NCBI GenBank assembly: GCA_002269645.1
Contig: NIVC01002383.1
Location: forward strand, 1 to 64,000
Origin: Macrostomum lignano
Taxonomy: Eukaryota
DNA length: 64,000 nt
Direction of reading: 5' to 3'
Both the position numbers and the translations under genes were made by a program. This document shows, in pieces, positions 1 to 59,406 of the stretch. Below the pieces are notes generated by a model. The model was given only the letters and a program-made list of their open reading frames with translations, did not search any database and had not been told where the DNA came from. Positions within the stretch are counted from its first letter, which is position 1, and every line of letters begins with the position of its first letter.

Positions 1-470
1 TATATGACGCTTCTATGCTTTTTATATGACGCTTCTATGATTGTTACATGACGCTTCTATGCTTTTTATAATGACGATTCTATGATTTTTACATGACGCT
101 TCTATGATTTTTACATGACGTTTCTATGATTTTTTCATGACGCTCCTATGTTTTTTTTCATGACGCTTCTATGATTTTTACATGACGCTACTATGATTTT
201 TACATGACGCTTCCATGATTTTTTACATGACGCTTCCATGCTTTTTACATGACGCTTTATGATTGTTTACATGATGCTTCTACGATTTCTGCCAGGACGC
301 TTCTAATGATTTTTACATGATGCTTCTATGATTTTTTCATGACGCTCCTATGATTTTTCATAGACGCTTCCATGATTTTTACATGACGCTTCTATGATTT
401 TTTACATGACGCTTCTATGATTTTACATGACGCTTCTATGATTTTTTACATGACGCTTCTATGATTTTTT
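1..470. repeat. Minisatellite, ~21-22 bp unit (TTTTTACATGACGCTTCTATGA-like), about 20 copies, runs off the window start
   Basis: Direct tandem reiteration of catgacgcttctatga with variable T-runs. Confidence 0.95.
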
Positions 471-1079
471 AGTTTCTTCTTGGTGTTAAAAAGCTTTAAT
501 TAAAAAAATTCCACTCTCTCAAAATTCGAACCATCGTCCCTGCATTTAGCATCAGTCTGTTTACCTCTAGGCTAGCTCTCATCGTTTTGATAATATGAAT
601 TTTAGCACTTATAATTATAAGTTTCAAAACTCCAAGCATGGAGTAAATCACACGAGGCAGTTATACATAATCAATTTTCAGTCAGTCAGTATCAGTTAAC
701 AATATGGTTACGCAATTATTAAATCAAGTTCTGTGCTACGCTTCCACACTGCATTTTCAATTCAAGTCAGAGTTACAATTCAGTTATGATGCAATCTATT
801 TCAGAATCAGAATTCAACCAGTCAGTTTTTCTCTAGCATTCTTACAATGCATTTCAAGTCGAAAAGTTTGCTTGACCTTTGCAAAAAAGCATGTTTTTCG
901 AATATTTAATCGCTTTAACATGGAGCAATTTCTTAGCCAAGATGCAGTACCGTCACGGGGGAAAATTTCTGATCAAAACAGTGCAAGTCTCATGAAAATC
1001 GGTTAAGCCATTTTTTCTCTAATCGATTACAAGCAAGCAAGCAAGCAAGCAAGATTTTCATTTTTAGTATATAGGATTT

Positions 1080-1485
1080 TCTGATCAGAACATCGTTGCG
1101 CAATTTTCTATAGTCAGTCAGCCCGTGCGCCAAGATAAAAGTGTACACACGCCGCCACTGAGACGCGACCATCCCCCCACTGGAGAGAAAATACACTACA
1201 GAGATAGGAGAAAGTTGTGGCGCAATCGCTCAAAATCATGCAAATTTTCGGCTCCGAGCAGAAAAAGTGTCCAGAGAAGGTTAGGAAATCAGTTTTCTGC
1301 TTTTTTAGGGATCTTAAAATGTGAAAATAAAAAATTGAAATAGCCCACTGCAGTCCCGGAAAATTTGCAGTTTCCCCATATAAGTTTCAACGCTGACTTG
1401 CAAGTATTCTAGGAGGAGTTATGCAACACACAAACAAACAGACAAACAAACAAACAATCATCGCACCAACTTTAGTATTAGGAGA
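1080..1485 (-). mobile_element. Partial, more diverged non-autonomous Helitron unit (5' part only); left edge of the array
   Basis: Shares the agtcagcc..tgtacacac..gtggcgcaatc and cccatataagtttcaacgctgac modules and the terminus (minus TCTCCTAATACTAAAG). Faint homology also at ~670-730. Confidence 0.7.
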
Positions 1486-4400
1486 CGAGGCCAACTCCTC
1501 CTTCGGAGAAGAAAGGGGAAGAACTCCAATCAGCGCGAATTCCATTCCCTGAACTCCATCAGCGGAATCCCATTTTCCAACACCTCTCCGCGCAACAGAA
1601 ATCGTCTCCGTGAAACTGAACACTATCGAAATCCTCTCCGTGAAACTGAACACCATCGAAATATACTCCGCGAAATAGAAATCCTCTCCGTGAAACTGGA
1701 CTAAATCGAAATTTCTACGTCAAACAGCCCAGCTCTCAGAATTCATTGGTTAGGGTTAGGGTTAGGGTTAGAGCTACACACAGCTGCGTGTTGAAAGGCG
1801 CCGTAAAAACATTGAACCAATTAAATTGCGCAACTTATTTCTCAGGCAGTCAGTATCAGCCTCAGTTAAAGTTAACAAAAAGATTGCGCAATCTAAATCA
1901 ACCCTCAAATACACAGCAACCGACCCCCCTTCCAATATGCAGTGCAGCTAGAAATTGAACCCCCCTTCACCAACTATTGGGGGGTCGGTCGAACCCCCAT
2001 TGAACTCCAAAATGAGCACAATCTTTGCAGAAAGCTAAAAGTATGAAAATCTTTTCTTGAATGCTGTGAATTAAATTTTCATATTTAAAGCAAAAAACTT
2101 ATATCCCCGAACTCATTGCAGCAAGATCTTTCCAGCAATATAAGTCTCTCCTCTCTAAGTTCAAAACTCGAGCAACAGTTAGTGTTTGAAACTTTCTGAT
2201 TTTAAGCATTGAAATATCGAGTGTACGTTCACTGCCTGCTAAAGATGCTCGCAAGTTTATGCATTAAAATGCACTGAATTTCACTGTGCAAAAAATACAC
2301 AGGGCTTCCTGTTAAAAAACAGAACACAAATAGTTGCGCAATTGTCTATAAAGTCAGTCAGTGAGCCAGGGTTCAAGTGTACACACGCAGCCACTGAGAA
2401 CGCGACCATCCCCCACTTGAGAGAAAATACACTGCCAAGATAGAAAAATTTTATGGCGCAATCACTAAAATTGATGCAAATTTTCAGCTCCAAGCAGAAA
2501 GAGGGGACAATTAAGATTATCAAAGGTCAAGACCGCCATTTTCTGCTTTTTTAGGGATCTTAAAAATTGAAAATGAAAGATTAAAATAGCCTAAAGCCAT
2601 CCTCGGAAAATTTGCAGTTTTCCCATATAAGTTTCAACGCTGACTTGCAAGTATTCTAGGAGGAGTTATCCAACAAACACACACACACACAGACAAACAA
2701 CGCACCAGTTTTAGTATTAACGAGTGGAACTCCTCCTTCGGAGGAGAAAGGGGAAGAACTCCCATCACCGGAATTCCATTCCCTGAAATATCCATCAACT
2801 GAAATTGCATTTCTTGAACCCTATTTTCCCAATCGTCTCCAAATTCTTTACAAAACCTTTCAAAGACCATGGCTCAAAGACTCTCACGTCTCTGATATCT
2901 CCTCTCTCCTCTCTTTGCTATTATCGTGACTCTCTTCTCTCTCCTCTCTCTCATCTCATCTCTACCCCTACTCCTTATTTATCTCTTCTCTCTTGTCTTT
3001 CGTCTGTACCTTCTCCTGTCTCTTGTCTCCTCTCTTCTCTCATATCTCCTCTTCACTTCTGTCTCCTGTATCTTCTCTTCGCTCTTATCTCTTCCTCTTC
3101 TCTTCTCTCTCATGTCATCTCTACTCACTTGTCTATCGTCTCTCTTAACCCTCTCTCTCTTCTCTTTTCTCTCCTCTCTGCTCTCATTTTTCATATCTCA
3201 TATACGCTCTCACACTCTACTTTCTTGTCTCCCATCCTTCTTTCCTCCTTTCCACTATCCCCTGTCTCTTCTCTTCTCTCTTTTCTATCCTCTCCATTCT
3301 CTCTTCTCTCCTCTCCTTTCTCCTTTCATCTTCTCCCCTCTCTTCTCTCCTCTCCTTGCTCCTTTCATCTTCTCCCCTCTCTTCTCTCCTCTCCTTGCTC
3401 CTTTCATCTTCTCCCCTCTCTTCTCTAATCTCTAATCTCTTCTCTGTTATGTCCTCACTCATCTCTTCTCATCGCATCTCTCATCCCTCCTCTCCTCCCT
3501 ACTTTCCTCTCTTAACTCTCTCATCTCTGATCTTTCATCTCTCTCCTCTCTCCTCTCTCTCTTCTCCTCTCGCTTCTCTCTCCTCTCTCTCCTCTCATCT
3601 CTACTACCTTATTTATATCTTCTCCCTGATCTTTCGTCTCTACTCTCTCCTGTCTCCTTCCTCCCCTCTTTTCTCCTCTCTTCTCTCCCCTCCTCTCTCA
3701 TCTCTCATCCTTCATCTCACTCTTTCTTTCTCCTCTACTTTCCCCTCTCTTCTATTTCCTCTGTACGCTCTTATCCCTCATCTATTCTCTATCCTATCAT
3801 CTCTCTTGTCTCCCTCTGTTATCTCATATCTCCCCTCTCATCTCCTATCTCCTTTTCTCTTCTCCCTCCTTTGTTCCGTCCTTACTCCCCTCTTCTCTCC
3901 ATCTGTTTAGCGGAATGGGCGTTCGCGCCTTCCCGCTGTGTCCCCCCGGGACAGCCCTGCAGCTAAGTCTCCCATCTGTCATGTCTAATCTCTCCACTCA
4001 TTTCTACTCTGTTTTCTATCATCTCATCTCTCTTCTCTTTTCATTCTTCTCTTTACTCTCTTCTCTGACTGATTGAAGATGCCAAATTCATCAAGATCCT
4101 CTCCGCAAAGCAGTCCATGCAACTGAAAACCATCGAAATCCTCTCCTTGAAACTTAAATCCATTAAAATCGTCTCCATAAAACAGAAATCAATCATAATT
4201 TATCTCCGCGAAACAGAAATACTCTCCGTGAAACTGAAAACCATCGAAATCCTCTCCACGAAACAGAAATCCTCTCCGTCAAAATTAAAACATTGAAATC
4301 GTCTCCGCTAACTGGACTCAATCAATTTTTTTTCCGTCAAACAACTTAACTCTCCGGATTCATTGGTTAGGGTTAGGGTTAGGGTTAGGGTTAGGGTTAG

Positions 4401-7400
4401 AACTACACACAGCTTCGTGTTAAAATGCACTGATAAAAATATTGAACTATTGCAATAATTGAATCAATTCATTGCGCAACCGATTTCACAGTCAGTCAGT
4501 ATCAGTCTCAGTTAAAGTTATTAAAAACATTGCGCAATCTAAATCAACCCTCCAATACACAGCAGCAGTGAGAAGTTGAACCCTCCCCCCAACCTTTATC
4601 TATTACGTCTCGCAAAACTGAGTACAATTTTTGCAGAAAGTTAAAAGTATGGAAATACTTTTTCAAATGCTGTGCTTTTTCTTTTCATATTTAAAGCAAA
4701 CAACTTACATCCCCGAACTCAGCGTTGCAAGATCTTTCCAGCAATATAAGTTTCTCCTCTCAAAGTTTAAAACTCGAGGAACAGTTAGCGTTTAAAACTG
4801 TCTGATTTATAGCATTGAAGTATCGAGTGTACGTTCTCTGCCTGCTTGCAAGTTGATGCATTGAATTTCAATGTCCAACAAATACACAGGACTGCCCATT
4901 GAAAGGCAGGAAAACTTATCAGTAGCCATATCATTGCGCAATTATCTATACAGTCAGCCAGTGAGCCAGGGTCCAAGTGTACACACGCAGCCACTGAGAA
5001 CGCTCCCAACCCCCACTGGAAAGAAAATACACTACAGAGATAGGGAAAAGTTGTGGCGCAATCACTAAAAATTCATGCATTTTTTCAGCTCCAAGCAGAA
5101 AGAGGGGACAATTAAGATTATCAAAGGTCAAGATTCAAGTTTTCTGCTTTTTTGAGGATCTAAGAAATTAAAATTTCAGAATTAAAATAGCCTATAGCCG
5201 ACCTCGGATTATTTCCAATCTTCCCATATAAGTTTCAACGCTGAGTTGCCACTATTCAAGGAGGAGTTGTCGAAATGACACACACACACACAGACAGACA
5301 AACAACGCGTCAACTTTAGTATATATAGAGAGAGACGAGTGGAACTCCTCCTCTGGAGGAGAAAGGGGAAGAACTCCCATCACCGGAATTCTGAAGGGAA
5401 AGAACTCCCATCAGCTGAAATTCCATGACTTGAATCCCATCTTCCAAATCATCTCCAAATCCTCTACAATGCATTTCAATTACCGGATATCTTGTTTTCC
5501 CTATTTGCAAAAACTCACTGGCATTGTCCAGACTCGGACTCTCATGTCTCTGCTCTCATTTCTCATATCTCATATCTTTCATATCACCATCTCCTTTCTT
5601 ATCTTCCATCTTTCTGCCCTCCTTACTACCGTCTCTTGTCACCTCTCTTTTCTCTCCTCTCCATTCTTTCTTCTCTCCTTTCCTTTCTCCTCTCATCTTC
5701 TCCCCTCTCTTCTCAAATCTCTCTCTCTCTTTTCTCACTTATCTCTTTTCTATTTGCATCTCTCATCTCTCATCTCTCTCCTCTCATATGTACTATCTTA
5801 TTTATCTCTTCTCCCAGGTCTTTCAAATTTACTCACTCCTGTCTCCTCTCTCCCCTCGTCTCTCCTCTCTCATATCTCTTCTCTACTCACTTATCTATTC
5901 TCTCTACTCTGCTCCCCTTTTACACTTTCCTATATGCTCTCACTCTCACTCTCTCCTTTCTTATCTCCTGTTTTTACACTCCTTTCTACCACCTGTCTCC
6001 TCTCGTTTCTCTCCTCTCTGCACTCTCATCTTTACCCTCTTCTTTTTCCTCACTACTTTCTTCTCTTAAATCTCTGATCTCTGATCTTTCATCTCTCTCC
6101 TCTCAACTCTCACCTCTCTCCTCTCTTTCCTCTCTTCTATTGCCTCTGTGCGCTCTTATCCCTCTTTTCTTCTCTGTCCTGTCTCCTCTCTGCTATCTCA
6201 TATCTCCTCTCTCATATCCTCTCCCTTCATCTCCTCTCTCCTCTTCTCTTCTCTCTTCCTTCGTTCCCGCCTTACTACCCTCTTCTCTCCCATCTGTCAT
6301 GTCTAATCTCTCCACTCATTTCTACTCTGTTTTCTATCATCTCATCTCTCTTCTCTTTTCATTCTTCTCTTTACTCTCTTCTCTGACTGATTGAAGATGC
6401 CAAATCCATCAAGATCCTCTCCGCGCGAAGCAGAAATCCTGTCCGTGCAACTGAAAACCATCGAAATCGTCTCCGTGAAACTGGACTCCTTCGAAATCCT
6501 CTCCTTGAAACTTAAATTCATCAAAATCGTCTCCATAAAACAGAAATCAATCATAAATTATCTCCACGAAACAGAAATCCTCTCCGTGAAGCTGAACACC
6601 ATCGAAATCCTCTCCACGAAACAGAAATCCTCTCCGTCAAAATTAAAACATTGAAATCGTCTCCGCTAAACTGGACTCAATCAAAATTTTTCCGTCAAAC
6701 AACTCAACTCTCCGGATTCATTGGTTAGGGCTAGGTTTAGGGTTAGAACTACGCACAGCTTCGTGTTAAAAGGCACTGATAAAAATATTGAACTAATTGA
6801 ATCAATTCACTGCGCAACCGATTTCACAGTCAGTCAGTATCAGTCTCAGTTAAAGTTAACAAAAACATTGCGCAATCTAAATCAACCCTCCAATACACAG
6901 CAGCAGTGAGAAGTTGAACCCTCCCCCAACTTTATCTATTCGTCTCGCAAAACTGAGTACAATTTTTGCAAAGTTAAAAGTATGCAAATAGTTTTTTAAA
7001 TGCTGTGCTTTTTCTTTTCATATTTAAAGCAAACAACTTATATCCCGAACTCAGCGTTGCAAGATCTTTCCAGCAATATAAGTTTCTCCTCTCAAAGTTT
7101 AAAACTCGAGGAACAGTTAGCGTTTGAAATTTACCAATTTCCCGACTGCTTGCTAAGTTGCTAGAGAAGCTCGCAAGTTTATTCATTGAATTTCACTGCC
7201 AAACTAATACACAGGGCTGCCTATGGAAAAAAGGCGCCAATAATAAAACCAAATGAATCTCGACACAGTCTATCTATTCACACTGTACAACTGCTATGTA
7301 CACTCAGCCCAAGCCCAACCCCCGTTCTGGGTTAAGCATTAAATTTAACTCAGCCCCCAACACGCGGGGGGTTTTATTTGCATTGAACCCAGAACACGCG

Positions 7401-7699
7401 CACCCACCACCCCTCAATACACAGCGGCTCGCGGGCGGAGGTTGGGGTGGCTATTTTTACAAACTGGCTGCTGCCCCAGTCAGAGTGGCCAAAGAAGGTT
7501 ATTGGGGTTAAAAAAGCAGTTTTCTGCTTTTTTAGGGATGTTAAAATGTGAAAATTAAAAATTAAAATAGCCTAAAGCCTGCTCCGGAAAATTTGCAGTT
7601 TTCCCATATAAGTTTCGACGCTGACTTGGCAGAATTGTAGGAGTTCACTTAATGCATACAGACAGACAGACAAACATCGCGTCAGTTTTAGTATTAGGA
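1486..7699 (-). mobile_element. Three head-to-tail non-autonomous Helitron units (1486-2720, 2721-5335, 5336-7699)
   Basis: Each begins (minus strand) T(C)..ATACTAAA plus a TG/TGTC microsatellite and ends with hairpin CTCCTCCnnnGGAGGAG (or one G:T variant), 5 nt, then CTCG. Same termini as the RepHel-encoding unit; no credible ORF. Confidence 0.8.
2880..4070 (+). repeat. Complex CT-rich polypyrimidine tract, representative of tracts in the longer units
   Basis: Almost purely C/T on plus. Related tracts at about 5540-6390, 18190-18800, 21310-22020, 23520-24230, 26640-27350, 31960-32560, 33840-34550, 39620-40330, 42740-43450, 44960-45870, 47240-47550 and 49510-gap. Confidence 0.9.
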
Positions 7700-7708
7700 C
7701 GAGGCCAA

Positions 7709-7725
7709 CTCCTCCGCTGGAGGAG
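7709..7725 (-). other. Helitron 3' subterminal hairpin (7-bp stem, 3-nt loop), 9 nt from the 3' end
   Basis: Plus strand ctcctcc-gct-ggaggag is a perfect inverted repeat; an equivalent hairpin is at the same place in every unit. Confidence 0.8.
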
Positions 7726-9163
7726 AAAGGGGAAGAACTCCTATCACCGGAATTCCATTAAGTGATCTCCATCAGCTGAATCCCATAACCCAACTCAGTT
7801 TCAGTAAAAGTCACACGAAGCAGCTTTGACATTGACATAACTATTTCTCAGGCAGTCAGTATCAGTCTCAATTAAGTGAACATTATAGTTGCGCAATCTA
7901 TGTAAATCAACCCTCCAATACACAGCGACCCACCCCCTCCAATGCACCGCGGCATTTGACCCCCCACCTCTTGAATTTCACTGCGCAGCTAATACACAGG
8001 GCTGCCTTTTGAAAGGCACCGATAATAAAGCTGTAAAATTCAAGTGCTCACTGTCAACTGAAATTGATGCAAATCAAACTTTAGGAATATGAGTCAGCGT
8101 TAGGGTGCGATTGCAGCTTAAATGTTCTGCTATGGCATTCTCTATTAAGAGCTTAGAGTTCACAGTCAGTCTAAAATTGTGATAATCTAAAGTCTGTGAT
8201 AGACCGCCACTTTGCGCAAATCATTAATTGAATGAATCACTCTGTAACAGCTGGTTGGCTACTCATTCTCTGCCAATTCATTGTAAGGCAGTTAAATGTG
8301 CGAAAAACTGATTGGCTGCCCGTCAGCTATAGCAGTCATGCAGGACTGTACATCTTAGTGAGAATGGTGGAAAAAGTACCAAAACTACTTTGTATAGCTG
8401 CACTGAATTACAACTTCTTGACTTCTTCAAGTACTTATGTTGCTGCGTTCCTTTCACAGCTAGCTGAATACCCCTACTCGAATTCCTTCACCTCTGTTGA
8501 ATATAAAAACTAATTCAAAGACATTATTGGGGGGTACGCAGGAAACGATCGAATAAATGGGATAGTCTCTTTGGCTAAGTACTTGTTAAGTTTAAATTCA
8601 TGTGAATTTTATGCCTTTCCATTACTTATACATGTTACTAATAGCCTATGATTGACAGCCTTGTTTGTATTCTGAATCCTGCGCACCCCGAGTACAGTAT
8701 GGCATATATTTGTTTTAAGCAATGCATTACAATATAGGGATGCAAGCACAGGTGGAGAGAAATGGGAAGAGAAAAGGGCAAATAATTATCAAGGTTGTTT
8801 TCTAGAGTTGTTTTTTAGACTTGATTGAAAATCTAAATAAGTATTTAGGAGGCGATCTAAGAGCTACACTGGGAACCTACTTTATAGCATTTGAGCGCGA
8901 TCATCTTTAACTTAAAAAATAGGATTTAAAATTGAGTGAAAATTATGCAGAACGAAATAGAATGTTTAATATAAATAATTACGTATGGATACTTTGTACG
9001 TCGAAAATATTCTGAAAAATAAATACAGCAATTGGATCTAAATTGGTAGGAGCCCGAGCTTTCTTAGAAGCATCCCCTTATACTAAAATATTATATCTGT
9101 AATTCATTCAGCAGCTCTGTAAGTGGAACAGTTTTGCCAGTAGTTTATTATTCATGTTACAAA

Positions 9164-9846
9164 ATTATCACTCATAATTCGTCACTCTTATAATTCATCA
9201 CTCTCATGATTTTGATTTTTGACTTTCATAATTTGTCACTCTCATATTTTTCACTCTTATAACTTGTCACACTCTCAATTCGGCACTCTCATAAGTATTA
9301 TCGCTCTCAAATTTGTTACTCTCATTATTTGCAAAACTCTTAATTAGGCACTCTCATAATTTATCACTCACATAATTTTCAACTCTCAACTTTTCACTCA
9401 TAATTTGTCACTCTCATAGTTTGTCACTCATAATTTATCAATCTTATAATTTTTCACTCTGATAATTTGTCACTCCCTCGTCATTTTTCACTCACTCACT
9501 CATAAAATTTGTAACTCCCTCATCCTTTTTCACTCAATCACTCTCATAATTTGGCACTCTCATAAGTATTATCGCTCTCGAATTCGTTACTCTCATAATT
9601 TGCCACACTTTGCCACAATTTGTCACTACCTCTCATCATTTTTCACTCACTTACTCTCATAATTTGGAACTCTTATATGCATTATCGCTCTCAAATTTGT
9701 AACTCCCTTTCATACTTTGTCACTCACTCTCATAATTTGTCACTCGCTATCATAATTTGTCACTCACTCTCATTATTTGGCACTCACTCTCATTATTTGT
9801 CACTCGCTATCATAATTTGCCACTCACTCTTATAATCTGTCACTCA
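9164..9846. repeat. Degenerate minisatellite (~17-22 bp, TCACTCTCATAATTTG-like) downstream of the RepHel stop codon
   Basis: About 35 diverged tandem copies of tcactc(t)cataattt. Confidence 0.85.
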
Positions 9847-9904
9847 AACCTATATATTTCTTTCATCCTGCCTATGATTCAGTTCAGTTCAGTTCAGATA
9901 ATAG

Positions 9905-12900
9905 TTAGTTCTGCTTGCCGATAAGCTGGCGCAGCACGATGTTCCGCGTCCGTCCGCCTGGAGCCCGAACTTTGACGCCATCGGCACTCCGCGCACGACT
10001 CAGAGCCACGTAGAGCTGGCCATGCTGAAAGCAAGCCGTCGTCAGGTCGACGGCGTAGGTGCCCAGCGACTGGCCCTGGCTCTTGTGGATGGTCATGGCG
10101 AAGCACGGCCGGATCGGGAACTGCAGACGGCGGAAAACGAACGGAACCTCTGTCGGACTCGGCTCCTGCGGGATCCGCGGGATGAACACCTGCCGCGAAC
10201 GGTAGACGCCAGTGGTTACCTCCGCTAGCAGGACGTTGTCACGCAGTTCACGCAGCAGCAGCCGAGTCCCGTTGCACAGCAGCGGTGGGTCGAGATTCCG
10301 CATCATGACGACCGGCATGCCGACCTTCAGCTCCAGTCGGTGATGCGACATACCGCTGGGGTCCAGCCGGTTCAGCAGCTCCGGCGGAAAATTGGTCGCT
10401 GCCGTGTCGTCATTCGGAATCGAGTCGACAGATAAGTAGAGTCGGCTCTCACCGGGGAAGAGCGCTAAGCAGGCGGCGTTGGCCTCGTCCACCGTCCTGT
10501 TGAGTGGCGCCAGGATGCTCCGCTCCGCGAACATCTGGTCACGCTGCGCACTCGGCTCAAAGGACGGGTAAACGTGCCGGATGAGCTGCTCAGTGGTTGT
10601 GTCCTCGGGCAGAAGGATCTCGCTAGGCAAGGAGACCATGCCCTCAACGTCCTCTGGCAGCTCCCCGTTGCCAACCTGACGGTGAAAAAGTGGAATGAAA
10701 TTTTACAATTTTTTCCTTCAATTCGCATGCTTAATGAGAGCATAGAAACTCCAGAGATTCTCACCTGCATAAGAAAATCCGCGTAGCTTTGGAGAGCCGA
10801 GCCGCCCTCCAGCCGCAGATTCCTTGTGAGCTGGTGCTGCCGGAAGTGCGGCCACAGCACCGACCGATTCAGGCAGGCTTCGATCGTGTTGGCCTGCGTC
10901 CCTCCGGGCACAACAGCAAGCAACTGCCGAAAGTCGCCAGCCAGCACCAGCAGCGCTCCCCCGAACGGCTGCCCACCGTGCAGCAAATCCCGCAGAGTCC
11001 GCTCGACGATCTCGAGGTCTTTGCGGTGCGTCATCGGAGCCTCGTCCCACACGATGAGGCGGGCGTTCCGCAGAATCTCCGCCAATTTGCTCCGCCTGCC
11101 GATGGAGCAGAAGGCGCTGTCCTGCCGTACAGCGCAGACGGGGATCTTGAACCTGTAGGCAGGTATCGCGAGGATGGTCAATTGTGATGATAAATAAGGG
11201 ATGACTTTCTGTGCTTAAAAACTAACAGTTTATAAAAATATTTATGCGGACACAAAACTCACATCGAGTGGGCGGTCCGACCTCCGGGTAGAATAGTCGC
11301 CGCGATGCCCGATGACGCGACGGCAACAGCGATTTGACGTCTTGCTCGAACCGACTTCAGCAGAAGTGTGAGCAGGAACGTCTTGCCTGTGCCTCCAGGA
11401 GCGTCAATGAAATGCAGCCCGCCGCCACCGGCCGTCAGATTGGACTGCACGGCCTCGAAGACAGCTCGCTGCTCGTCAGTCAGGGTAGCGACCAGCGCAT
11501 CCACTTCGGACTGCAGCTCAGCAGCTTCATGGGGCGTCGGCAGGCAGTCAGAAAGAAGCCGAGTCTGGATATTGAAAAGTGGCTGTCATCAGTTAGCAAA
11601 TAAAGGTAAAAAAAATTAACAGTCAGTGCATAGAAGTGATTTTATTTACCTGATCCGGCTCTGCCAGTGGTTGAGGAAGGCCGTAGGCAGACAGCTCGGA
11701 TCCGCCCATCCGCTCCAGCCGCTTCTGCAGCGACCGCAGCACTTCGGCCATAGCAGCCTCGGCGCTCAAGCCCTGGTGCAGCAGGTCGCCAGCCATCTCG
11801 CGGGAAAACTCCTCCCAGAGCTTCACGGGGTCGCTTGGATCGCCGTGCGCCAAAATTGCGGCAAAAAGTCGGCGCAGAGCAGCAGGCATCCGCGTCTGGG
11901 CAGCTTCGGACAGACACAGCTGCCAGTGCCTGTCGTCTTCCAGCAGTCCGCGAGCCTGGCAGGCGGCCTTGAAGGTCGGCAGCAGGACTCCATCGACAGT
12001 GCGCAGAGCCTCGAACGAAGTCGGGCCGCGCACATTCACCAGCAGCAGGCGCAGGTAAAAACAGTCGCCCATCCGTGGACTGACTGTGTAGATGCGGCCG
12101 ATGTTGCTGGTCGTCAGAACATCGGCTGGCTGATCAGCAGCGACTCGGCCGCGACCTGCGCGATGCCACTGGTGCGCACTTCTGTCCCAGGTGAAGTGCC
12201 GGGGCACCTCCTGGTACAGCAGCCCTCGGGCGATATCGTCATGGCGACAAAGCTGGGCGGGTAAGAATAAGAACAGGAATTAACAGGAAGGAGGAAAAAG
12301 TTGAAAAATTGCACTTTTTCTGCAAAACTCACATCGAAGAAGGCGGTCAAAGTCGTGGCCTTGGGCGTAGCAGCAACAGCCTGAGCCGTCTCGTCTGTGA
12401 AGAAGACCCGCTGCTCGTCCTTAAGATGAACCGCGAGCCTGATCACAGGGGGGTATCGGCTGTGAACCTCAAAGCCCAGGATGGTGTTGACCGCCTCCAT
12501 TGGACCGATGAACCTGCCCAGTAGGTATTCGTCGATCTCATCGATCTTGTGTCGCTTTGCGGAAGTCGCAGCAGCAGCAGCAGCAGTCCCAGTCGACGTG
12601 GACGGACCGGCGATCGCCAGTGGTCCTTCAGTGGCCGAATCAGCGCTGGCATTCGCAGCAGCCGCCGACTCCTTACGGATCTGGTATGCTGCCATGTCGC
12701 TACCCTTGGTGATGTACTTCACCACGTACTTGATGGCCCGAACTGTCGCGCAGATCTCGACATTCAGGTGACAGCGAAACTCGCGCAGCAGCGCTGGGCA
12801 GTACGGCACCACCCAGCGGTTGTCAAAGGTGAACATCACCCTCTGACCGCCACGCAGCTTTGCGAGCTTCGTCACCGTGAAGCCGCCCATCTCGACGGAT

Positions 12901-15604: not shown

Positions 15605-16816
15605 TATTATAGTAAGCAAATAGGGAATAGCAAATGGGCAAAAAAGCAAAAAGCAAATGACAAAAAAATAAGGAAATAGCTCAATCGGAATATTAGACAA
15701 ATTCTATTCTGATATCGAAGGAAATGTAACTGAATTGGAATTTCGCGCTATTAAGTAAGAGTTCAGTGTAAGTAAAGGCCCAGTGTACGTGATTTTAGTC
15801 AAAAAAATAACTTGAGCCTCCACCCCCCCCCCGACTCCTCAAATACTGAAATTACTCCAAATGATAGCTGGCTTAAATGTGCGAACGCAATCCCCCAATT
15901 TTATCTGAAAGTTAAAAATAAGGTTACGCAATCTTAATAAACCCTCCAATACACAGCGACCGACCCCCCTCCAATGCAGAGCGGCAGTAAGAAATTGAAC
16001 TCCTCAACTTTATCTATTACGTATCGCAAAAATGAGTACAATCTTTGCAGAAAGTTAAAAGCATGGTTATCGTTTTCTGAATGCTGTGCTTTAAGTTTTC
16101 ATTTTTAAAGCAAACAACTTACATCTTTGAAACCAGCGTTGCAAGATCTTTCCAGCAATATAAGTCTCTCCTCTCAAATTTTAAAAGTTGAGGAACACTT
16201 TGCGTTTAAAACTTCCCAGTTTAAAGCATTGAATTTTTGTGCGTACATTCACTGCCTTTTCCACTGAGAGGCTCGCAAGTTTATTCATTGAATTTCACAG
16301 TTCAACACAGGGTTTCCTAATGAAAGGCGCTGATAATAAAACCAATTGAATCTCGACCCAGTAGCCATATCGTTGCGCTTCACACCCACCACCCCACGAA
16401 ATTCATCAATTAAGCCAAATTGCAGTTGACTAATATCGATCCGTAGCAATTGCCGGTGAGCCAGGGTCCAATTGTACGCATGCAGCCACTTAGAACGCCC
16501 CATCCCCCCACTGGAGAGTAAATGCACTGGCGACATAGGAAAAAGTTGTGGCGTAATCACTCAAAATTCATGCAAATTTTCAGCTCCGAGCAGAAAGAGG
16601 GTACAATTAAGATTATCAAAGGTCAGAATTGCCGTTTTCTGCTTTTTTAGGGATCTTAAAATGTAAAAATAAAAGATTAAAACAGCCTAAAGCCATCCTC
16701 GGAAAATTTGCAGTTTTCCCACATAAGTTTCAACGCTGACTTGCAAGTATTCTAGGAGGAGTTATCCAACAAACACACACACACACAGACAAACAACGCA
16801 CCAGTTTTAGTATTAA

Positions 16817-40800: not shown

Positions 40801-43800
40801 AATTGAATCAATTCATTGCGCAACCGATTTCACAGTCAGTATCAGTCTCAGTTAAATTTAACCAAAAGATTGCGCAATTTAAATCAACCCTCCAGTACAC
40901 AGAGACCGACCCCTTTTCAATACGCTGTGGCAGTTAGAAATTGAACCCCCATCTGTTGGGGGCATTGAACCAAAAAATGAGTACAATCTTTGCATAAAGC
41001 TAAAAGTATGGAAATAGTTTTTTTGATGCTGCTCTTTTAGTCTTTATATTGAAAGCTAACAATTTATATCCTCGAACTCAGCATTGCAAGATCTTTTCAG
41101 CAGTATAAGTCTCTTCTCTTAAAGTTTAGAACTCGAAGAGCAGTTAGCGTTTGAAAGTTTCCGTTTTAAAGCATTAAAATATCGAGTGTACGTTCACTGC
41201 CTGCCAAAGAGGCTCGCAAGTTGATTCATTCATTACACAGGCTGGCTATTACACAGGGCAGCGTATTGAAAGGCACAGATAATAAAACAAATTGATGGTG
41301 CAACCGATTTCACAGTCAGTCAGTATCAGTCTCAGTTAAAGTTAACAAAAACATTGCGCAATCTAAATCAACCCTCCAATACACAGCAGCAGTGAGAAGT
41401 TGAACCCTCCCCCCAACTTTATCTATTACGTCTCGCAAAACTGAGCACAATTTTTGCAGAAAGTTAAAAGCATGGAAATAGTTTTTTCAATGCTGGCTTT
41501 TTCTTTACACATTTAAAGCAAACAACTTATATCCCCGAACTCAGCGTTGCAAGATCTTTCCAGCAATATAAGTTTCTCCTCTGAAAGTTTAAAACTCGAG
41601 GAACAGTTAGCGTTTGAATTTACCAATTTCCCGACTACTTGCTAGAGAAGCTCGCAAGTTTATTCATTGAATTTCACTGCCAAACTAATACACAGGGCCG
41701 ATAATAAAAAATGAACCAATTGAATCAATTGATTGTGCAATATATTTCTGTGTTAGTCAGTATCAGTCTCAGTTAAAGTTAACAAACAGATTGCGCAATC
41801 TAAATCAACCCTCAAATACACACCGACCGACCTCCTAACTGTTGGGGGGTCGGTCGAACGCCATTGAAATCCTAAAATGAGTACAATCTTTGCAGAAAGT
41901 TTAAAGTATGGAAATAGTTTTTGCAATGCAGAGCTTTTAGTTTTCATATTTGAAGCAAACAATTTATATCCCTGAAATCAGCTTTGCAAGTTCTTTCCAG
42001 CAATATAAATTTTTTCTCTCAAAGTTAAAAACTCGAGCAACAGTTTGCGTTTGAAACTTTCTGATTTAAAGCATTGAAATATCGATTGTACGTTCACTGC
42101 CTGCTAAAGAGGCCCGCAAGTTTATGCATTGAATTTCAAGGTTCAACAAAATCACAGGGCTGCCTATTGAAAATTAGAACACAAATCTTTGCGCAATTGT
42201 CTATACAGTCAGCCAGTGAGCCAGGGTCCGATTGTACACAGGCAGCCATTTAGAACGCCCCATCCCCCCACTGGAGAGAAAATACACTGCAGAGATAGGG
42301 AAAAGTTGTGGCGCAATCACTTGAAATTCATGCAAATTTTCAGCTCCAAGCAGAAAGAGGGGACAATTAAGATTATCAAAGGTCAAGACCGCCGTTTTCT
42401 GCTTTTTTGAGGATCTTAGAAATTAAAATTTCAGAATTAAAATAGCCTATAGCCGACCTCGGATAATTTCCAATCTTCCCATATAAGTTTCAACGCTGAG
42501 TTGCACTATTCAAGGAGGAGTTGTCGAAATGACACACACACAGACAGACAGACAAACAACGCGTCAACTTTAGTATATACGAGTGGAACTCCTCCTTCGG
42601 AGGAGAAAGGGGAAGAACTCCCATCACCGGAATTCTATTCCCTGAAATATCCATCAACTGAAATTCCATGTCTTTAACCCTATCTTCCAAATCGTCTCCA
42701 AATTCTTTACAAAATCTTTCAAAGACCATAGCTCAAAGACTCTCAAGTCTCTCATATCTCCTCTCTCCTCTCTCTCATCTCATCTCTACCCCTGCTCCCT
42801 TATTTATCTCTTCTCCCTCGTCTTTCGTCTGTACCTTCTCCTGTCTTCTGTCTCCTCTCTTCACTCTTATCTCTCCCTCTTCTCTCCTCTCTCATATGTC
42901 ATCTCTACTCACTTATCTATCGTCTCTCTTAACCCTCTCTCTCTCTTCTCTTTTCTCTTCTCTCTGCTCTCATTTCTCATATTTCATATACGCTCTGACA
43001 CTACTTTCTTGTCTCCCATCTTTCTTCCTCCTTTTCACTATCCCCTGTCTCTTCTCTTCTCTCTTTTCTATTCTCTCCATTCTCTCTTTTCTCCTTTCCT
43101 TGCTCCTTTCATCTCTCTCCTCTCTCCTCACTCTCTTCTCCTTTCGCTTCTCTCTCCTCTCTCTCCTCTCATCTTTACTACCTTATTTATATCTTCTCCC
43201 TAGTCTTTCGTCTGTACTCTCTCCTGTCTCCTCTCTCCCCTCCTCTCTCATCCCTCATCTCCTCATCTCACTCTTTCTTTCTCCTCTACTCTCCCCTCTC
43301 TTCTATTGCCTCTGTACGCTCTTATCCCTCATCTATTCTCTCTCCTATCATCTCCAATCTGTCATGTCTAATCTCTCCACTCAATTATACTCTGTTTTCT
43401 ATCATCTCTTCTCTCTTCTCTTTTCAGTCTTCTCTTTACTCTCTTCTCTGACTGATTGAAGATGCCAAATCCATCAAGATCCTCTCCGCGAAGCAAAAAT
43501 CCTGTCTGTGCAACTAAAAACCATCGAAATCCTCTCAGTGAAACTGGACTCCTTCGAAATCCTCTCCTTGAAACTTAAATCCATCAAAATTGTTTCCATA
43601 AAACAGAAATCAATCATAAATTATCTCCGCGAAACAGAAAGCCTCTCCGTGAAGCTGAACATGATCGAAATCCTCTCCGTGAAACTGAACACCATGGAAA
43701 TCCTTTCGTGAAACTGAACATCATCGAAATCCTCTCCACGAAACAGAAATCTTCTCCGTCAGAATTTAAACATTGAAATCGTCTCCGCTAAACTTGACTT

Positions 43801-46800
43801 AATCGAATTTTTTCCGTCAAACAACTCAACTCGCCAGATTCATTAGGGTTAGGGTTAGGGTTAGGGTTAGGGTTAGAACTACGCACAGCTTCGTGTTAAA
43901 AGGCACAGATAAAAATATTGAACTAATTGAATCAATTCATTGCGCAACCGATTTCACAGTCAGTCAGTATCAGCCTCAGGTAAAGTTAACAAAAACATTG
44001 CGCAATCTAAATCAACCCTCCAATACACAGCAGCAGTGAGAAGTTGAACCCTCCCCCCAACTTTATCTATTACGTCTTGCAAAACTGAGTACAATATTTG
44101 CAAAAGTTAAAAGTATGGAAATAGTTTTTCAAATGCTGTGCTTTTTCTTTTCATATTTAAAGCAAACAACTTATATCCCCGAACTCAGCGTTGCAAGATC
44201 TTGCCAGCAATATAAGTTTCTCCTCTCAAAGTTTAAAACTCGAGGAACAGTTAGCGTTTGAAACTGTCTGATTTATAGCATTGAAGTATCGAGTGTACGT
44301 TCACTGCCTGCTTGCAAGTTGATGCATTGAATTTCAATGTCCAACAAATACACAGGACTGCCCATTGAAAGGCAGGAAAACTTATCAGTAGCCATATCAT
44401 TGCGCAATTATCTATAAGTCAGCCAGTGAGCCAGGGTCCAAGTGTACACACGCAGCCACTGAGAACGCTCCCACCCCCCACTGGAGAGAAAATACACTAC
44501 AGAGATAGGGAAAAGTTGTGGCGCAATCACAAAAAATTCATGCATTTTTCAGCTCCAAGCAGAAAGAGGGGACAATTAAGATTATCAAAGGTCAAGATTC
44601 AAGTTTTCTGCTTTTTTGAGGATCTTAGAAATTAAAATTTCAGAATTAAAATAGCCTATAGCCGACCTCGGATAATTTCCAATCTTCCCATATAAGTTTC
44701 AACGCTGAGTTGGCACTATTCAAGGGGGAGTTGTCGAAACGACACACACACACACAGACAGACAAACAACACGTCAACTTTAGTATATACGAGTGGAACT
44801 CCTCCTTCGGAGGAGAAAGGGGAAGAACTCCCATCACCGGAATTCCATTCCCTGAAATATCCATCAACTGAAATTCTATGTTTTGAACCCTATCTTCCAA
44901 ATGGTCTCCAAATTCTTTACAAAACTTTTCAAAGACCTTTTCAAAGACCTTTACAAAACTTTTCTCCCTCTCTTGACTCTCTTCTCTCTCCTCTCTCTCA
45001 TCTCATCTCTACCCCTACTCCCTTATTTATCTCTTCTCCCTCGTCTTTCGTCTGTACCCTCTCCTGTCTCTTGTCCCGTCTCTTCTCTCTTATCTCTCCC
45101 TCTTCTCTCCTCTCTCATATGTCATCTCTACTCACTTATCTATCGTCTCTCTTAACCCTCTCTCTCTTCTCTTTTTTCTTCTCTCTGCTCTCATTTCTCA
45201 TATCTCATATACGCTCTCACACTCTACTTTCTTGTCTCCCATCTTTCTTTCCTCCTTACCACTATCCCCTGTCTCTTCTCTTCTCTCTTTTTTATTCTCT
45301 CCATTCTCTCTTTTCTCCTCTCCCTGCTCCTTTCATCTTCTCCCCGCTCTTCTCTAATCTCTAATCTCTTCTCTCTTATGTTCTCACTCATCTCTTCTCA
45401 TCGCATCTTTCATCTCTCCTCTCTCCTCTCTCTCTTCTCCTTTCGCTTCTCTCTCCTCTCTCTCTCCTCTCATCTCTACTACCTTATTTATATCTTCTCC
45501 CTGGTATTTCGTCTGTACTCGCTCCTGTCTCCTTTCTCCCCTCTTTTCTCCTCTCTTCTCTCTTCTTTCCTCTCTCATCTCTCATCCCTCATCTCACTCT
45601 TTCTTTCTCCTCGACTCTCCCCTCTCTTCTATTTCCTCTGTTCGCTCTTATCTCTCATCTATTCTCTCTCCTATTATCTCTCTTGTCTCCCTCTGCTATC
45701 TCATATCTCCCCTCTCATCTCCTCTCTCCTCTTCTCTTCTCTCTCCTTCGTTCCCGCCTTACTTCCCTCTTCTCTCCCATCTGTCATGTCTAATTTCTCC
45801 ACTCATTTCTCCTCTGTTTTCTACCCACTCATCTCTCTTCTTTTTTCATTCTTCTCTTTACTCTCTTCTCTGACTGATTGAAGATGCCAAATCCATCAAG
45901 ATCCTCTCCGCGAAGCAGTCTGTGCAACTGAAAACCATCGAAATCCTCTCCGTGAAACTGAAGACCATCGAAATCCTCTCCGCGAAACAGAAATCCTCTC
46001 CGTGAAACTGAAAACCATCGAAATTCTCTCTTTAAAACTGGACTCAATCGAAATTTTCTCCGTCAAAAAGAATAAAATATCAGAATTCATTGGTTAGGGT
46101 TAGGGTTAGGGTTAGGGTTAGGGTTAAAGCTACACACATCTGCGTGTCCAAATAAAAAAATTGAACCAATTGAATCAATTGATTGCGCAACTGATTTCTC
46201 AGTCAGTCAGTATCAGTCTCAGTTAAAGTTAACAAAAAGATTGCGCAATCTAAATCAACCCTCCAGTACACAGAGACTGACCCCTTTTCAATACGCAGTG
46301 GCAGTTAGAAATTGAACCCCCAACTGTTGGGGGCATTGAACTAAAAATGAGTACAATCTTTGCAGAAAGTTAAAAGTATGAAAGTTTTTCAAATGCTGTG
46401 TTTTTCTTTCATATTTAAAGCAAACAACTTATATCCCGAACTCAGCGTTGCAAGTTCTTTCCAGCAATATAAATTTTTTCTCTCAAAGTTAAAAACTCGA
46501 GCAACAGTTTGCGTTTGAAACTTTCTGATTTAAAGCATTAAAATATCAATTGTACGTTCACTGCCTGCTAAAGAGGCCCGCAAGTTTATGCATTGAATTT
46601 CAAGGTTCAACAAAATCACAGGGCTGCCTATTGAAAATTAGAACACAAATCTTTGCGCAATTGTCTATAAAGTCAGCCGGTGAGCCAGGGTCCGATTGTA
46701 CACAGGCAGCCATTTAGAACGCCCCATCCCCCCACTGGAGAGAAAATACACTGCAGAGATAGGGAAAAGTTGTGGCGCAATCACTTGAAATTCATGCAAA

Positions 46801-49679
46801 TTTTCAGCTCCAAGCAGAAAGAGGGGACAATTAAGATTATCAAAGTCAAGACCGCCGTTTTCTGCTTTTTTGAGGATCTTAGAAATTAAAATTTCAGAAT
46901 TAAAATAGCCTATAGCCGACCTCGGATAATTTCCAATCTTCCCATATAAGTTTCAACGCTGAGTTGCCACTATTCAAGGAGGAGTTGTCGAAATGACAGA
47001 CAGACAAACAACGCGTCAACTTTAGTATATAAGTGGAACTCCTCCTCTGGAGGAGAAATGGGAAGAACTCCCATCACCGGAATTCTGAAGGGGAAGAACT
47101 CCCATCACCGGAATTCTGAAGGGGAAGAACTCCTATCAGCTGAAATTCAATGAATTGAATCCCATCTTCCAAATCATCTCCAAATCCTCTACAATCTATC
47201 AACTCCCATCTCTCAACTCTTGCGGCCTGCGCTCTGATTTTTATTCTTACTCTCTTCTTTCTCCTCACTAATTACTTCTCTCTGCACTTTTATCTCTCTC
47301 ATCTCTATCTTCCATCTCTCTTCTCCCTCCTCTCTCCCCTGCTCTCTCATCCCTCATCTCCTCATCTCACTCTTTCTTTCTCCTCTACTCTCCCTTCTCT
47401 TCTATTGCCTCTGTACGCTCTTATCCCTCATTTATTCTCTCTCCTATCATCTCCAATCTGTCATGTCTAATCTCTCCACTCAATTATACTCTGTTTTCTA
47501 TCATCTCTTCTCTCTTCTCTTCTCAGTCTTCTCTTTACTCTCTTCTCTGACTGATTGAAGATGCCAAATCCATCAAGATCCTCTCCGCGAAGCAAAAATC
47601 CTGTCTGTGCAACTAAAAACCATCGAAATCCTCTCAGTGAAACTGGACTCCTTCGAAATCCTCTCCTTGAAACTTAAATCCATCAAAATTGTTTCCATAA
47701 AACAGAAATCAATCATAAATTATCTCCGCGAAACAGAAAGCCTCTCCGTGAAGCTGAACATGATCAAAATCCTCTCCGTGAAACTGAACACCATGGAAAT
47801 CCTTTCGTGAAACTGAACATCATCGAAATCCTCTCCACGAAACAGAAATCTTCTCCGTCAGAATTTAAACATTGAAATCGTCTCCGCTAAACTTGACTTA
47901 ATCGAATTTTTTCCGTCAAACAACTCAACTCGCCAGATTCATTAGGGTTAGGGTTAGGGTTAGGGTTAGGGTTAGAACTACGCACAGCTTCGTGTTAAAA
48001 GGCACTGATAAAAATATTGAACTAATTGAATCAAATCATTGCGCAACCGATTTCACAGTCAGTCAGTATCAGTCTCAGTTAAAGTTAACAAAAACATTGC
48101 GCAATCTAAATCAACCCTCCAATACACAGCAGCAGTGAGAAGTTGAACCCTCCCCAACTTTATCTATTACGTCTCGCAAAACTGAGTACAATTTTTGCAG
48201 AAAGTTAAAAGTATGGAAATAGTTTTTTAAATGCGGTGCTTTTTCTTTTCATATTTAAAGCAAACAACTTATATCCCTAAACTCAGTGTTGCAAGATCTT
48301 TCCAGCAATATAAGTCTCTCCTCTCAAAGTTTAAAACTCAAGGAGCAGTTAGCGTTTGAAATTTACCGATTTCCTGACTGCTTGCCTGTGAGGCTCGCAA
48401 TTTTGTACATTGAATTTCACTGCCAAGCTAATACACAGGGCCGATAATAAAAAAGCTAACCAATTGAATCAATTGATTGCGCAATATATTTCTGTGTTAG
48501 TCAGTATAAGTCTCAGTTAAAGTTAACACAAAGTTTGCGCAATCTAATCAACCCTCCAATACAAAGCAACTGACCCCTTCCTATACACAGCGCCAGTTAG
48601 AAGTCGAAACCCCCAACTTTATCTCTCACCTCTCGCCAAAATGAGTACAATCTTTGCAGAAAGTTTAAAGTATGGAAATAGTTTTTGCAATGCAGAGCTT
48701 TTAGTTTTCATATTTGAAGCAAACAATTTATATCCCTGAAATCAGCTTTGCAAGTTCTTTCCAGCAATATAAATTTTTTCTCTCAAAGTTAAAACTCGAG
48801 CAACAGTTTGCGTTTGAAACTTTCTGATTTAAAGCATTAAAATATCAATTGTACGTTCACTGCCTGCTAAAGAGGCCGCAAGTTTATGCATTGAATTTCA
48901 AGGTTCAACAAAATCACAGGGCTGCCTATTGAAAATTAGAACACAAATCTTTGCGCAATTGTCTATACAGTCAGCCAGTGAGCCAGGGTCCGATTGTACA
49001 CAGGCAGCCATTTAGAACGCCCCATCCCCCACTGGAGAGAAAATACACTGCAGAGATAGGGAAAAGTTGTGGCGCAATCACTTGAAATTCATGCAAATTT
49101 TCAGCTCCAAGCAGAAAGAGGGACAATTAAGATTATCAAAGGTCAAGACCGCCTTTTCTGCTTTTTTGAGGATCTTAGAAATTAAAATTTCAGAATTAAA
49201 TAGCCTATAGCCGACTCGGATAATTTCCAATCTTCCCATATAAGTTTCAACGCTGAGTTGCCACTATTCAAGAGGAGTTGTCGAAATGACACAACAACAC
49301 AGACAGACAGACAAACAACACGTCAACTTTAGATATACGAGTGGAACTCCTCCTTCGGAGGAGAAAGGGGAAGAACTCCCATCACCGGAATTCCATTCCC
49401 TGAAATATCCATCAACTGAAATTCATGTGTTTTGAACCCTATTCCAAATGCGGTCTCAAATCTTTACAAAACTTTCAAAGACCTTTTCAAAGACCTTTAC
49501 AAAACTTTCTCCCTCTCTTGACTCTCTTCTCTCTCCTCTCTCTCATCTCATCTCTACCCCTACTCCCTTATTTATCTCTTCTCCCCTCGTCTTTCGTCTA
49601 CCCTCTCCTGTCTCCTTGTCCGTCTTCTTCTCTCTTATCTCTCCCTCTTCTCTCCTCTCTCATATGTCATCTCTACTCA
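16817..49679 (-). mobile_element. Seventeen complete plus one partial head-to-tail non-autonomous Helitron units
   Basis: Unit low-coordinate ends at about 16817, 18057, 19923, 21151, 23360, 26480, 29353, 30592, 31819, 33683, 35806, 37038, 38234, 39457, 42580, 44790, 47032, 49338. Size classes ~1.2, ~1.87, ~2.1-2.3 and ~2.9-3.1 kb, all with the same termini. Confidence 0.82.
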
Positions 49680-59377: not shown

Positions 59378-59406
59378 AGTTTTTTGTAGCTTTTTATCTC
59401 CACAAT

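Follow-up and report, generated by a model that had tools for sequence, protein, structure and literature searches.

A head-to-tail Helitron array in Macrostomum lignano with a full-length, autonomous-type element among its units

Has a Helitron landed in an unrelated satellite, or is the satellite itself built of Helitrons? This question is raised by a 64,000-nt stretch of the Macrostomum lignano genome (assembly GCA_002269645.1, contig NIVC01002383.1, positions 1 to 64,000; hereafter the window), in which a long block of repeats encloses a gene for RepHel, the Helitron protein. A previous reading of the letters alone (the sequence-only reading) had described the locus as a head-to-tail Helitron array with the RepHel element as one of its monomers. 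The termini found in the window and at other RepHel loci of this species support that core reading, and we consider it highly probable that the window array is a head-to-tail Helitron cluster of M. lignano with one full-length autonomous-type monomer, running beyond both edges.

A 35-nt junction-side motif (AACTCCTCCNNNGGAGRAGAAAKGGGAAGAACTCC, up to two mismatches) matched the window 22 times, on the plus strand only, with starts at 1493, 2728, 5343, 7707, 16824, 18064, 19930, 21158, 23366, 26487, 29360, 30599, 31826, 33690, 35813, 37045, 38239, 39463, 42587, 44797, 47037 and 49345. The same motif had no match in 100 dinucleotide-preserving shuffles. Splitting the window at these junctions yielded 21 complete units of 1.2–9.1 kb, numbered U1 to U21 in plus-strand order, in exact agreement with the 22 one-orientation junctions and 21 units claimed before. 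All array units lie on the minus strand, with the 3' end of each joined to the next 5' end. Read on that strand, a junction has the 3' end ...GGAGTTCTTCCCCTTTCTCCTCC-NNN-GGAGGAG-TT(CCA|GGC)CTCG (the array units' 3'-end pattern being the hairpin plus TTNNNCTCG), a filler of 0–14 nt of T, C and A (nothing, TC, TCC, TCTC, TCTATC.. and similar), and the 5' end (TC..)TA(T/A)ATACTAAA(G/A)TTG(G/A)(T/C)GCG..., followed by a (TGTT/CTGT/TG)n microsatellite. Self-BLAST showed dense same-strand repetition throughout 1092–49679, and BLAST found no inverted self-matches in the window. Positions 1–49679 have ~40% GC and a strongly negative GC skew, with the exception of a 57–59% GC island at 10–16 kb. On the right, the repeat block is limited by an assembly gap of 650 N at 49680–50329, and BLAST of 50330–64000 against the array found no array-related sequence beyond it. 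Because the block stops at the gap, the array is at least 49 kb long. The extent given earlier, 1080–49679, keeps its right limit and loses its left one, as the array continues past 1080 to the window start.

The fourth unit, U4, had been placed at 7700–16816, with the shared termini around a full RepHel gene. We recovered the same coordinates, and Pfam domains Helitron_like_N (E = 1.8e-52), PIF1 and Pif1_2B on the minus strand. The gene (57–59% GC) is divided by short AT-rich stretches into nine open segments: 15603–15062, 14950–14804, 14647–14024, 14007–13264, 13202–12117, 12279–11626, 11585–11262, 11214–10468 and 10702–9908, with the stop at 9905–9907. Frame-compatible GT..AG introns can be modelled at all eight joins; since such candidates are too many, we give open segments and not exact splice sites. 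The best solved-structure relative of U4 RepHel was Helraiser (7lcc, E = 8.3e-215), and the alignment keeps the HxH (GLPHVHALL), Tyr-Tyr (IKYVVKYITKG), Walker A (GGTGKT) and DE motifs, so that the HUH nuclease, two tyrosines and SF1B PIF1-like helicase of a Helitron RepHel are all present. The joined model of 1594 aa aligned end to end with the M. lignano models P0024 (1–1686 of 1688) and P0030 (1–1631 of 1633), as well as with a more distant homologue, P0003 (1–1612 of 1616; 40% identical); the closest proteins, at 84% and 79% identity, are from M. lignano. The intact motifs and the end-to-end alignment with homologues indicate that U4 RepHel is full-length, with its predicted catalytic motifs intact, and plausibly functional. 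Its N-terminal charged part (REAEGEVQRQHRLE..) contains a 69-bp in-frame tandem repeat (x3.5, 15234–15478).

For comparison, seven other RepHel copies of the family (L001–L007) were fetched from the same assembly. All eight sampled copies, that of the window included, lie in same-orientation arrays with the same termini, and unit orders differ among the eight arrays. Wherever both ends were within the fetched DNA, the RepHel unit began with 5' (TC..)TATACTAAAG and closed with hairpin-CTCG. Those elsewhere that were bracketed in full measured 10130, 10131, 10703, 12688 and 14374 bp. At L006 the fetched DNA starts inside the element and the 3' end alone is visible; both ends are visible at the other six loci. 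The seven copies had no junction motif between the RepHel gene and the outer ends, and none ended within the coding core with termini of its own. Copies ending inside 8030–15900 with their own termini and unrelated flanks were what the sequence-only reading had said would mark a Helitron inserted into an unrelated satellite. A control locus whose RepHel belongs to another M. lignano family (L008; P0009, annotated OTU-domain-containing) had none of the junction motifs, which suggests from a single locus (n = 1) that the array habit is not general for RepHel loci in the assembly.

Two of these copies, L002 7074–17203 and L007 9042–19172, define the ends of the mobile unit. They match over 10.13 kb (BLAST 100.0%, 10131 aligned positions; lengths 10130 and 10131) and lie in opposite orientation, ~10 kb apart on contig NIVC01000566.1, with different flanks. 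On the 3' side the identity ends 1 nt past CTCG, and on the 5' side it covers just 16 conserved nt of the upstream unit's 3' end, where the hairpin loops are AGA and AAC. The mobile unit therefore has the ends TCTCTTTACTAAAG...CCACTCG. Each copy is placed precisely between the ..CTCG of a resident 3' end and a T..ATATACTAAA motif, and neither has a target-site duplication. Their match over the whole length, with different flanks, suggests very recent movement of the L002/L007 lineage. Window units were likewise 97.7–99.3% identical to units at other M. lignano loci with different neighbours; in these inter-locus pairs the last 400 nt were 98.5–99.5% identical, and the adjacent 400 nt were 60–88% identical upstream and 79–94% downstream. 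Matching bodies with unrelated flanks, as expected of Helitrons, were thus seen both at L002/L007 and in the inter-locus pairs. Within the window, the pairs U15/U1 and U13/U6 (W_7/W_21 and W_9/W_16) were 99.2% identical, with unrelated upstream neighbours (flanks 60% identical).

Transposition is not the whole account of array growth. For U18/U9 and U17/U7 (W_4/W_13 and W_5/W_15), the upstream neighbours were also 99–99.8% identical, and such sharing of a neighbour by near-identical units indicates duplication of multi-unit blocks. Long off-diagonal self-BLAST matches cross junctions, and U10 has a breakpoint near 28587/28588 without a junction motif, at which a fusion deleted one junction. 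The array has therefore grown partly by multi-unit block duplication. The earlier term "transposon-driven" fits the mobile units with precise ends and is too exclusive given the block duplications. "Satellite" fits the head-to-tail arrangement over at least 49 kb and does not fit the monomers, which are heterogeneous (1.2–9.1 kb, six or more size classes, several subfamilies) and one of which is coding, unlike those of a classical satellite. The locus is better described as a transposon array.

At the termini, a hairpin with a 7-bp stem and a 3-nt loop (CTCCTCC-NNN-GGAGGAG) stood 9 nt from the end at all 22 window ends, as had been anticipated of a terminal hairpin with a short terminus, and also at the ends at L001–L007. 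The stem is conserved and the loop variable, with GAA, AGA, AGC and GGA in the window and additionally ATC and AAC at other loci. No terminal inverted repeat was found in U5, the sole short unit scanned.

Several observations weigh against a canonical Helitron, an autonomous U4 or a family confined to arrays. The predicted fold of the hairpin (–6.8 kcal/mol) was not significant against shuffles (z ~ –1.1), so the support for the hairpin comes from its positional conservation and variable loop, not from fold energy. The 3' tetranucleotide was CTCG at 18 of the 22 window ends, the rest being degenerate (CTC, CTT or CT), and not the canonical CTRR; of the end signals named earlier, hairpin-CTCG holds in the window and CTRR does not. 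CTRR is a consensus from which known Helitron families depart, and the CTCG end lowers the canonical status of the family, not its identity as a Helitron. A literal 5'-TC, the start expected earlier, opened the unit at six of the 22 junctions in the window, and the arrays of L001, L003 and L007 also start with it (CTAG|TCT..); most junctions read CTCG|T(T/A)(A/T)ATAC. Immediately 5' of each inserted unit stands a G instead of an A, and the units are flanked by other units (G|...|T) and not by host A|T; only the element that we call X, at the left edge of the window, shows A|TC. The autonomy of U4 is putative, since the introns of RepHel are modelled and the activity of the protein is deduced from its sequence. 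All comparison loci were reached through RepHel, which may bias the sample toward arrays; solitary non-autonomous copies were not reached, and the sole route to them, based on open reading frames (ORFs), gave no matches.

Some 55 nt from each unit's 5' end, in all three 5'-end types, is a conserved AACTCCTCCT motif (e.g. 17994–18003) that repeats the left arm of the 3' hairpin (16824–16833). It could pair with the right arm, and is a possible second transposase-binding site.

We considered and rejected assignment to Helentron/Helitron2. No endonuclease domain is present, and the ORF terminates after the C-terminal region of Pif1. Nor are the ends of the Helitron2 type, as nothing near the 3' end is complementary to the 5' terminus TATACTAAAG and only the internal CTCCTCCT (~55 nt in) pairs with the hairpin arm. 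Judged by their predicted protein and hairpin, these are canonical-type Helitrons that end in the non-canonical CTCG and vary at the 5' start. Like canonical Helitrons (the Helitron1 type; Helraiser/Helibat of vesper bats), the family has a RepHel with HUH, two catalytic tyrosines and a PIF1-like helicase, a subterminal 3' hairpin, two comparable insertions without target duplication and, in U5, no terminal inverted repeat. Unlike them, it has CTCG instead of CTAG/CTRR, units flanked by units instead of host A and T, a 5' end that is TC plus T/C/A filler in some units and T(T/A)(A/T)ATAC in most, and the extra CTCCTCCT motif ~55 nt inside the 5' end that echoes the left arm of the hairpin.

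The features from the left edge of the window to the gap are as follows.

1–1080, minus strand: 5' part of an X Helitron, with the 5' end TCCTATATACTAAAAATG at 1080–1063 (sequence and tandem-repeat evidence)
1081–1485, minus: U0, the 5' ~405 bp of an A/B-type unit, 3'-truncated, abutting the 5' end of X
1486–2720, minus: U1, A-type non-autonomous unit, 1235 bp; 5' TTAATACTAAAACTGGTGCG, 3' ..TTGGCCTCG
2721–5335, minus: U2, non-autonomous, 2615 bp, with a long CT-rich tract; 5' TC(TC)3TATATATACTAAAGTTGACGCG, 3' ..TTCCACTCG
5336–7699, minus: U3, non-autonomous, 2364 bp; 5' TCCTAATACTAAAACTGACGCG; hairpin loop AGA; without the telomeric block
7700–16816, minus: U4, full-length putatively autonomous Helitron, 9117 bp
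7700–7725, minus: 3' terminus of U4, hairpin CTCCTCC-AGC-GGAGGAG (7709–7725; predicted fold as above), then TTGGCCTCG (7700–7708)
9171–9846, minus: tandem repeats of 16–20 bp (CTCATAATTTGTCACT family) in the 3' untranslated part of U4
9905–15603, minus: RepHel gene of U4, ~9 exon-like open segments (domain search, homologue alignment)
16794–16816, minus: 5' terminus of U4, TTAATACTAAAACTGGTGCGTTG, then a (TGTT/TG)n microsatellite
16817–18056, minus: U5, A-type, 1240 bp
18057–19922, minus: U6, B-type, 1866 bp; A-like 5' end, TTCCACTCG 3' end; 99.2% identical to U13
19923–21150, minus: U7, A-type, 1228 bp
21151–23358, minus: U8, C-type, 2208 bp; 98.3% identical to L006 unit 12245–14475
23359–26479, minus: U9, D-type, 3121 bp; internal ~470-bp module x3; 99.3% identical to U18
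26480–29352, minus: U10, 2873 bp; fusion of a 3'-truncated and a 5'-truncated unit
29353–30591, minus: U11, A-type, 1239 bp; 5' filler TCTATCTATCT
30592–31818, minus: U12, A-type, 1227 bp
31819–33682, minus: U13, B-type, 1864 bp
33683–35805, minus: U14, C-type, 2123 bp; 99.3% identical over 1823 nt to L004 unit 5809–7985
35806–37037, minus: U15, A-type, 1232 bp; 99.2% identical to U1
37038–38231, minus: U16, A-type, 1194 bp
38232–39455, minus: U17, A-type, 1224 bp; degenerate 3' end ..GGCCTT
39456–42579, minus: U18, D-type, 3124 bp
42580–44789, minus: U19, C-type, 2210 bp; 97.7% identical, over its full length, to L004 unit 3606–5808
44790–47030, minus: U20, 2241 bp, C-like ends
47031–49337, minus: U21, 2307 bp; degenerate 3' end ..CCACT
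49338–49679, minus: 3' part of a further unit, cut by the assembly gap

The units fall into subfamilies by their ends. A units (1.2 kb; 5' ..GTTGGTGCG, 3' TTGGCCTCG) are the only ones that share both end types of U4. Element positions 1–909 and 8874–9117 of U4 are common to short units, and its coding core is flanked on both sides by a ~70–100-bp unit module; the A units look like U4 derivatives whose core has been lost between two copies of this ~100-bp module. The B units (1.9 kb) combine an A-type/U4-type 5' end with a TTCCACTCG 3' end. The C and D units (2.1–3.1 kb; 5' ..GTTGACG, 3' TTCCACTCG) have the ends of the autonomous copies of cluster 1, found at other loci, and a further type, "..GCTGACGTCG", matches the L002/L007 lineage, sharing 810 bp at 93% with its autonomous neighbour in L002. 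At least four subfamilies and three autonomous lineages are combined in the arrays, and the ends are complete at each joint. Because the end types of many neighbours differ from those of U4, the U4 enzyme would be the natural partner of only some of them, and the earlier view that U4 can mobilise all subfamilies of the array is probably too broad. Conservation between RepHel lineages is limited to the coding region and the ends, and the untranslated parts differ; the tandem repeats at 9171–9846 of U4 were not found in other RepHel copies. U4 positions 1–269 are 98.5% identical to L005 5400–5668. A 263-aa ORF in the C and D units (23447–24238) had no protein homologues and no Pfam domain and is therefore probably not a gene.

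Could the sequence between the outer ends of U4 nevertheless be a Helitron with its own termini within 8030–15900, inserted independently into an unrelated satellite? The U4 core (~910–8873) does lie between ~70–100-bp direct repeats of unit sequence, which could resemble insertion into a short unit, and the untranslated parts of U4 are not common to other RepHel copies. The flanking module is, however, a sub-repeat that also occurs in 2–3 copies within long non-autonomous units. The ~900 bp 5' of RepHel are homologous between U4 and the cluster-1 copies of another lineage, in which the U4 5' modules 1–365 and 560–909 also precede RepHel. The matching L002/L007 copies end at the outer termini, and the seven other copies share these termini (L006 its 3' end only), have no junction motif between gene and ends, and stand in the same array setting. 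We therefore regard an unrelated satellite as very improbable. Stacking of repeats by the assembler is equally improbable. The array does stop at the 650-N gap, and M. lignano assemblies are repeat-rich; against an artefact, the same architecture recurs with distinct unit orders and fillers in seven other contig regions of the assembly, and the junction fillers of the window are diverse and unit-specific.

The remaining alternatives concern how a genuine Helitron array grew. Unequal crossing-over in a small founder cluster, or its segmental duplication, with no continuing transposition, would explain the multi-unit matches across junctions, the unit pairs with 99–99.8% identical upstream neighbours and the U10 fusion. 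As the sole process it is unlikely, since units nearly identical to those of the window occur at other loci among different neighbours, U15/U1 and U13/U6 are 99.2% identical with upstream flanks at 60%, the two matching 10-kb copies have different flanks, and unit order differs among the eight loci. Rolling-circle over-replication in a single event, producing a concatemer that integrated once, has been proposed for plant centromeric Helitron arrays, where truncated elements are amplified into tandem arrays (Xiong, Dooner and Du 2016, as summarised in PMC12628747). Runs of 5'-end motifs without a unit body, such as L005 5283–5400 and L003 25467–25545, would be consistent with it. Yet one circle would yield a homogeneous array, whereas here neighbours are of different subfamilies and sizes, each with a 5' and a 3' end, and are not systematically each other's closest relatives; the plant arrays, by the same summary, combine numerous 5' ends with just one 3' end. 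We consider a single concatemer still less likely than duplication alone.

We propose instead that circles are inserted at existing junctions. RepHel would nick the 5' end of a unit, unwind the strand, and pause and cleave at hairpin-CTCG; where its ends are joined, the released circle would carry the sequence also found at a head-to-tail junction in the genome. The circle would then integrate preferentially at an existing junction or at a 5'-end-like TATACTAAA site, and unequal exchange or multi-unit mobilisation would copy blocks. Helraiser circles have precise 5'-TC/CTAG-3' head-to-tail joints, like the array junctions of M. lignano, and are active donors that need one nick only (PMC4778049). 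Integration of this kind would account for units of different subfamilies stacked in one orientation with precise joints, and for the position of the matching L002 and L007 copies, each of them at a junction. Very few independent insertions speak for junction targeting so far, and recombination at conserved unit ends could also set near-identical units among different neighbours. That junction-targeted insertion is the main builder of the arrays seems to us nearly, though not quite, an even call. More tentative, and somewhat doubtful, is the fuller picture of a family that prefers its own end-to-start junction or a TATACTAAA site as target, with a transposase acting much like a site-specific recombinase that threads circles in. 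Such a family would live almost wholly in self-built, mixed, one-orientation arrays that hold their own enzyme genes, and the conserved internal telomeric block may belong to this way of life, either through a function or through its history.

That telomeric block is (TTAGGG)2-5 on the plus strand, (CCCTAA)n in the orientation of the element. It occurs once in 19 of the 21 window units, mostly ~900–950 nt from the unit 5' end (e.g. 1750–1773, 4367–4396, 17080–17109, 22412–22441 and 47942–47971), and also in units of L001–L006; it is absent from U3, U4 and most autonomous copies. It may derive from a captured telomere or a healed break, or may be a functional site. Telomere-inserting Helitrons of Paramecium aurelia have internal satellites and C-strand telomeric repeats in a fixed orientation (PMC13085455). 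The (CCCTAA)2-5 block of the M. lignano units is likewise in C-strand orientation. In Paramecium, however, the repeats flank the element because the telomere is its target, whereas the M. lignano block is internal and missing from most autonomous copies.

At its left edge the array continues into X. After its 5' end TCCTATATACTAAAAATG, X has a (TTGC)n microsatellite, ~550 bp of unique sequence and a 22-bp satellite (4–469; 22-mer x21) that runs off the window. By BLAST, window 4–1031 is 86% identical to L002 18288–17263, directly after the 3' end of the autonomous element. The X of L002 (17204–24008) has at least 5.7 kb of the 22-mer. In L003 (322–3218), X contains a 23-mer x70 and a 17-mer x32, and its canonical CCCCCATCGGGGGGCGAAGATTGCTAG end is followed immediately by the TCTCTATACTAAAG of the next unit; L001 (X part 1–194) has the same X-to-unit joint. 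X Helitrons thus share the 5' motif TATATACTAAAAATG, differ in their internal satellites and end in a canonical hairpin-CTAG, so that the arrays include a second 3'-end type.

The runs of 5'-end motifs (TAATACTAAA..) without a unit body mentioned above, together with one at L001 15536–15650, consist of motifs only 20–100 nt apart, the spacers being CT-rich or short and unique. Such runs may represent abortive starts, or else array-edge junctions that have decayed. At L008 (contig NIVC01002606.1), positions 1–3041 are ~3 kb of a ~23-bp satellite upstream of the P0009-type RepHel gene, and satellites beside Helitrons may be common in the M. lignano genome.

The DNA to the right of the gap marks ordinary gene-bearing sequence beside the array. 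At 53277–55012 and 56050–58023 (minus strand) are a GC-rich ORF with a SAP domain (4.9e-10), possibly part of another mobile element, and an astacin metalloprotease gene fragment (1.1e-26). A 16-bp minisatellite (GGTGCTGGCGCCCCT[T/G]) at 58979–59377 (x25), a few kb from the array, was also found at L005 4980–5095, ~200 bp upstream of the array start and in the opposite orientation relative to the array. Further right are (TAGA)x141 at 60543–61106 and a 13-bp repeat, TCGGGATCAAGGA x135 with 97% matches, at 61585–63348, which is spanned by a spurious 605-aa ORF.

Arrays of rolling-circle transposons have been described in other organisms. Helitron-1_DPe forms head-to-tail arrays of a protein-coding rolling-circle transposon that expand a region of the Drosophila pseudoobscura Y (bioRxiv 10.1101/2021.06.02.446622), and the plant centromeric arrays are homogeneous and truncated according to the summary of Xiong et al. 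2016 in PMC12628747. Both resemble the present locus as head-to-tail copies; unlike the plant arrays, those of M. lignano mix subfamilies and lineages with complete ends. Non-autonomous Helitron/Helentron elements that carry satellites, namely DINE-1/DINE-TR1 of Drosophila and the Cg170-carrying elements of the Pacific oyster (PMC7492417 and PMC4067079), also have conserved ends, an end-proximal microsatellite and internal tandem repeats; here the units contain 30-bp repeats and CT-rich tracts, and the X elements contain satellites of 22, 23 and 17 bp. Unlike these elements, the M. lignano family has a partner protein without an endonuclease domain and showed no Helentron-type inverted repeat between 5' terminus and 3' subterminus, and its array repeat unit is the whole element, not an internal monomer. 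A literature search found no published account of this Helitron family or of such arrays in M. lignano. Helitron tandem arrays, including those of a coding element, were thus already known, and what seems distinctive here is that elements apparently land at each other's junctions.

How Helitron arrays form is still debated, with over-replication, double insertion and unequal exchange all under discussion. The M. lignano family offers an unusually clean natural test case, with dozens of precise joints across eight loci, several subfamilies each with a matching autonomous lineage, and matching 10-kb copies with different flanks. Since M. lignano can be cultured and made transgenic, the junction-targeting proposal is directly testable; if true, it would link the biochemistry of Helraiser circles to the growth of arrays in a genome. 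The arrays also explain part of the difficulty of assembling the M. lignano genome and should be masked as Helitrons, not as generic satellites.

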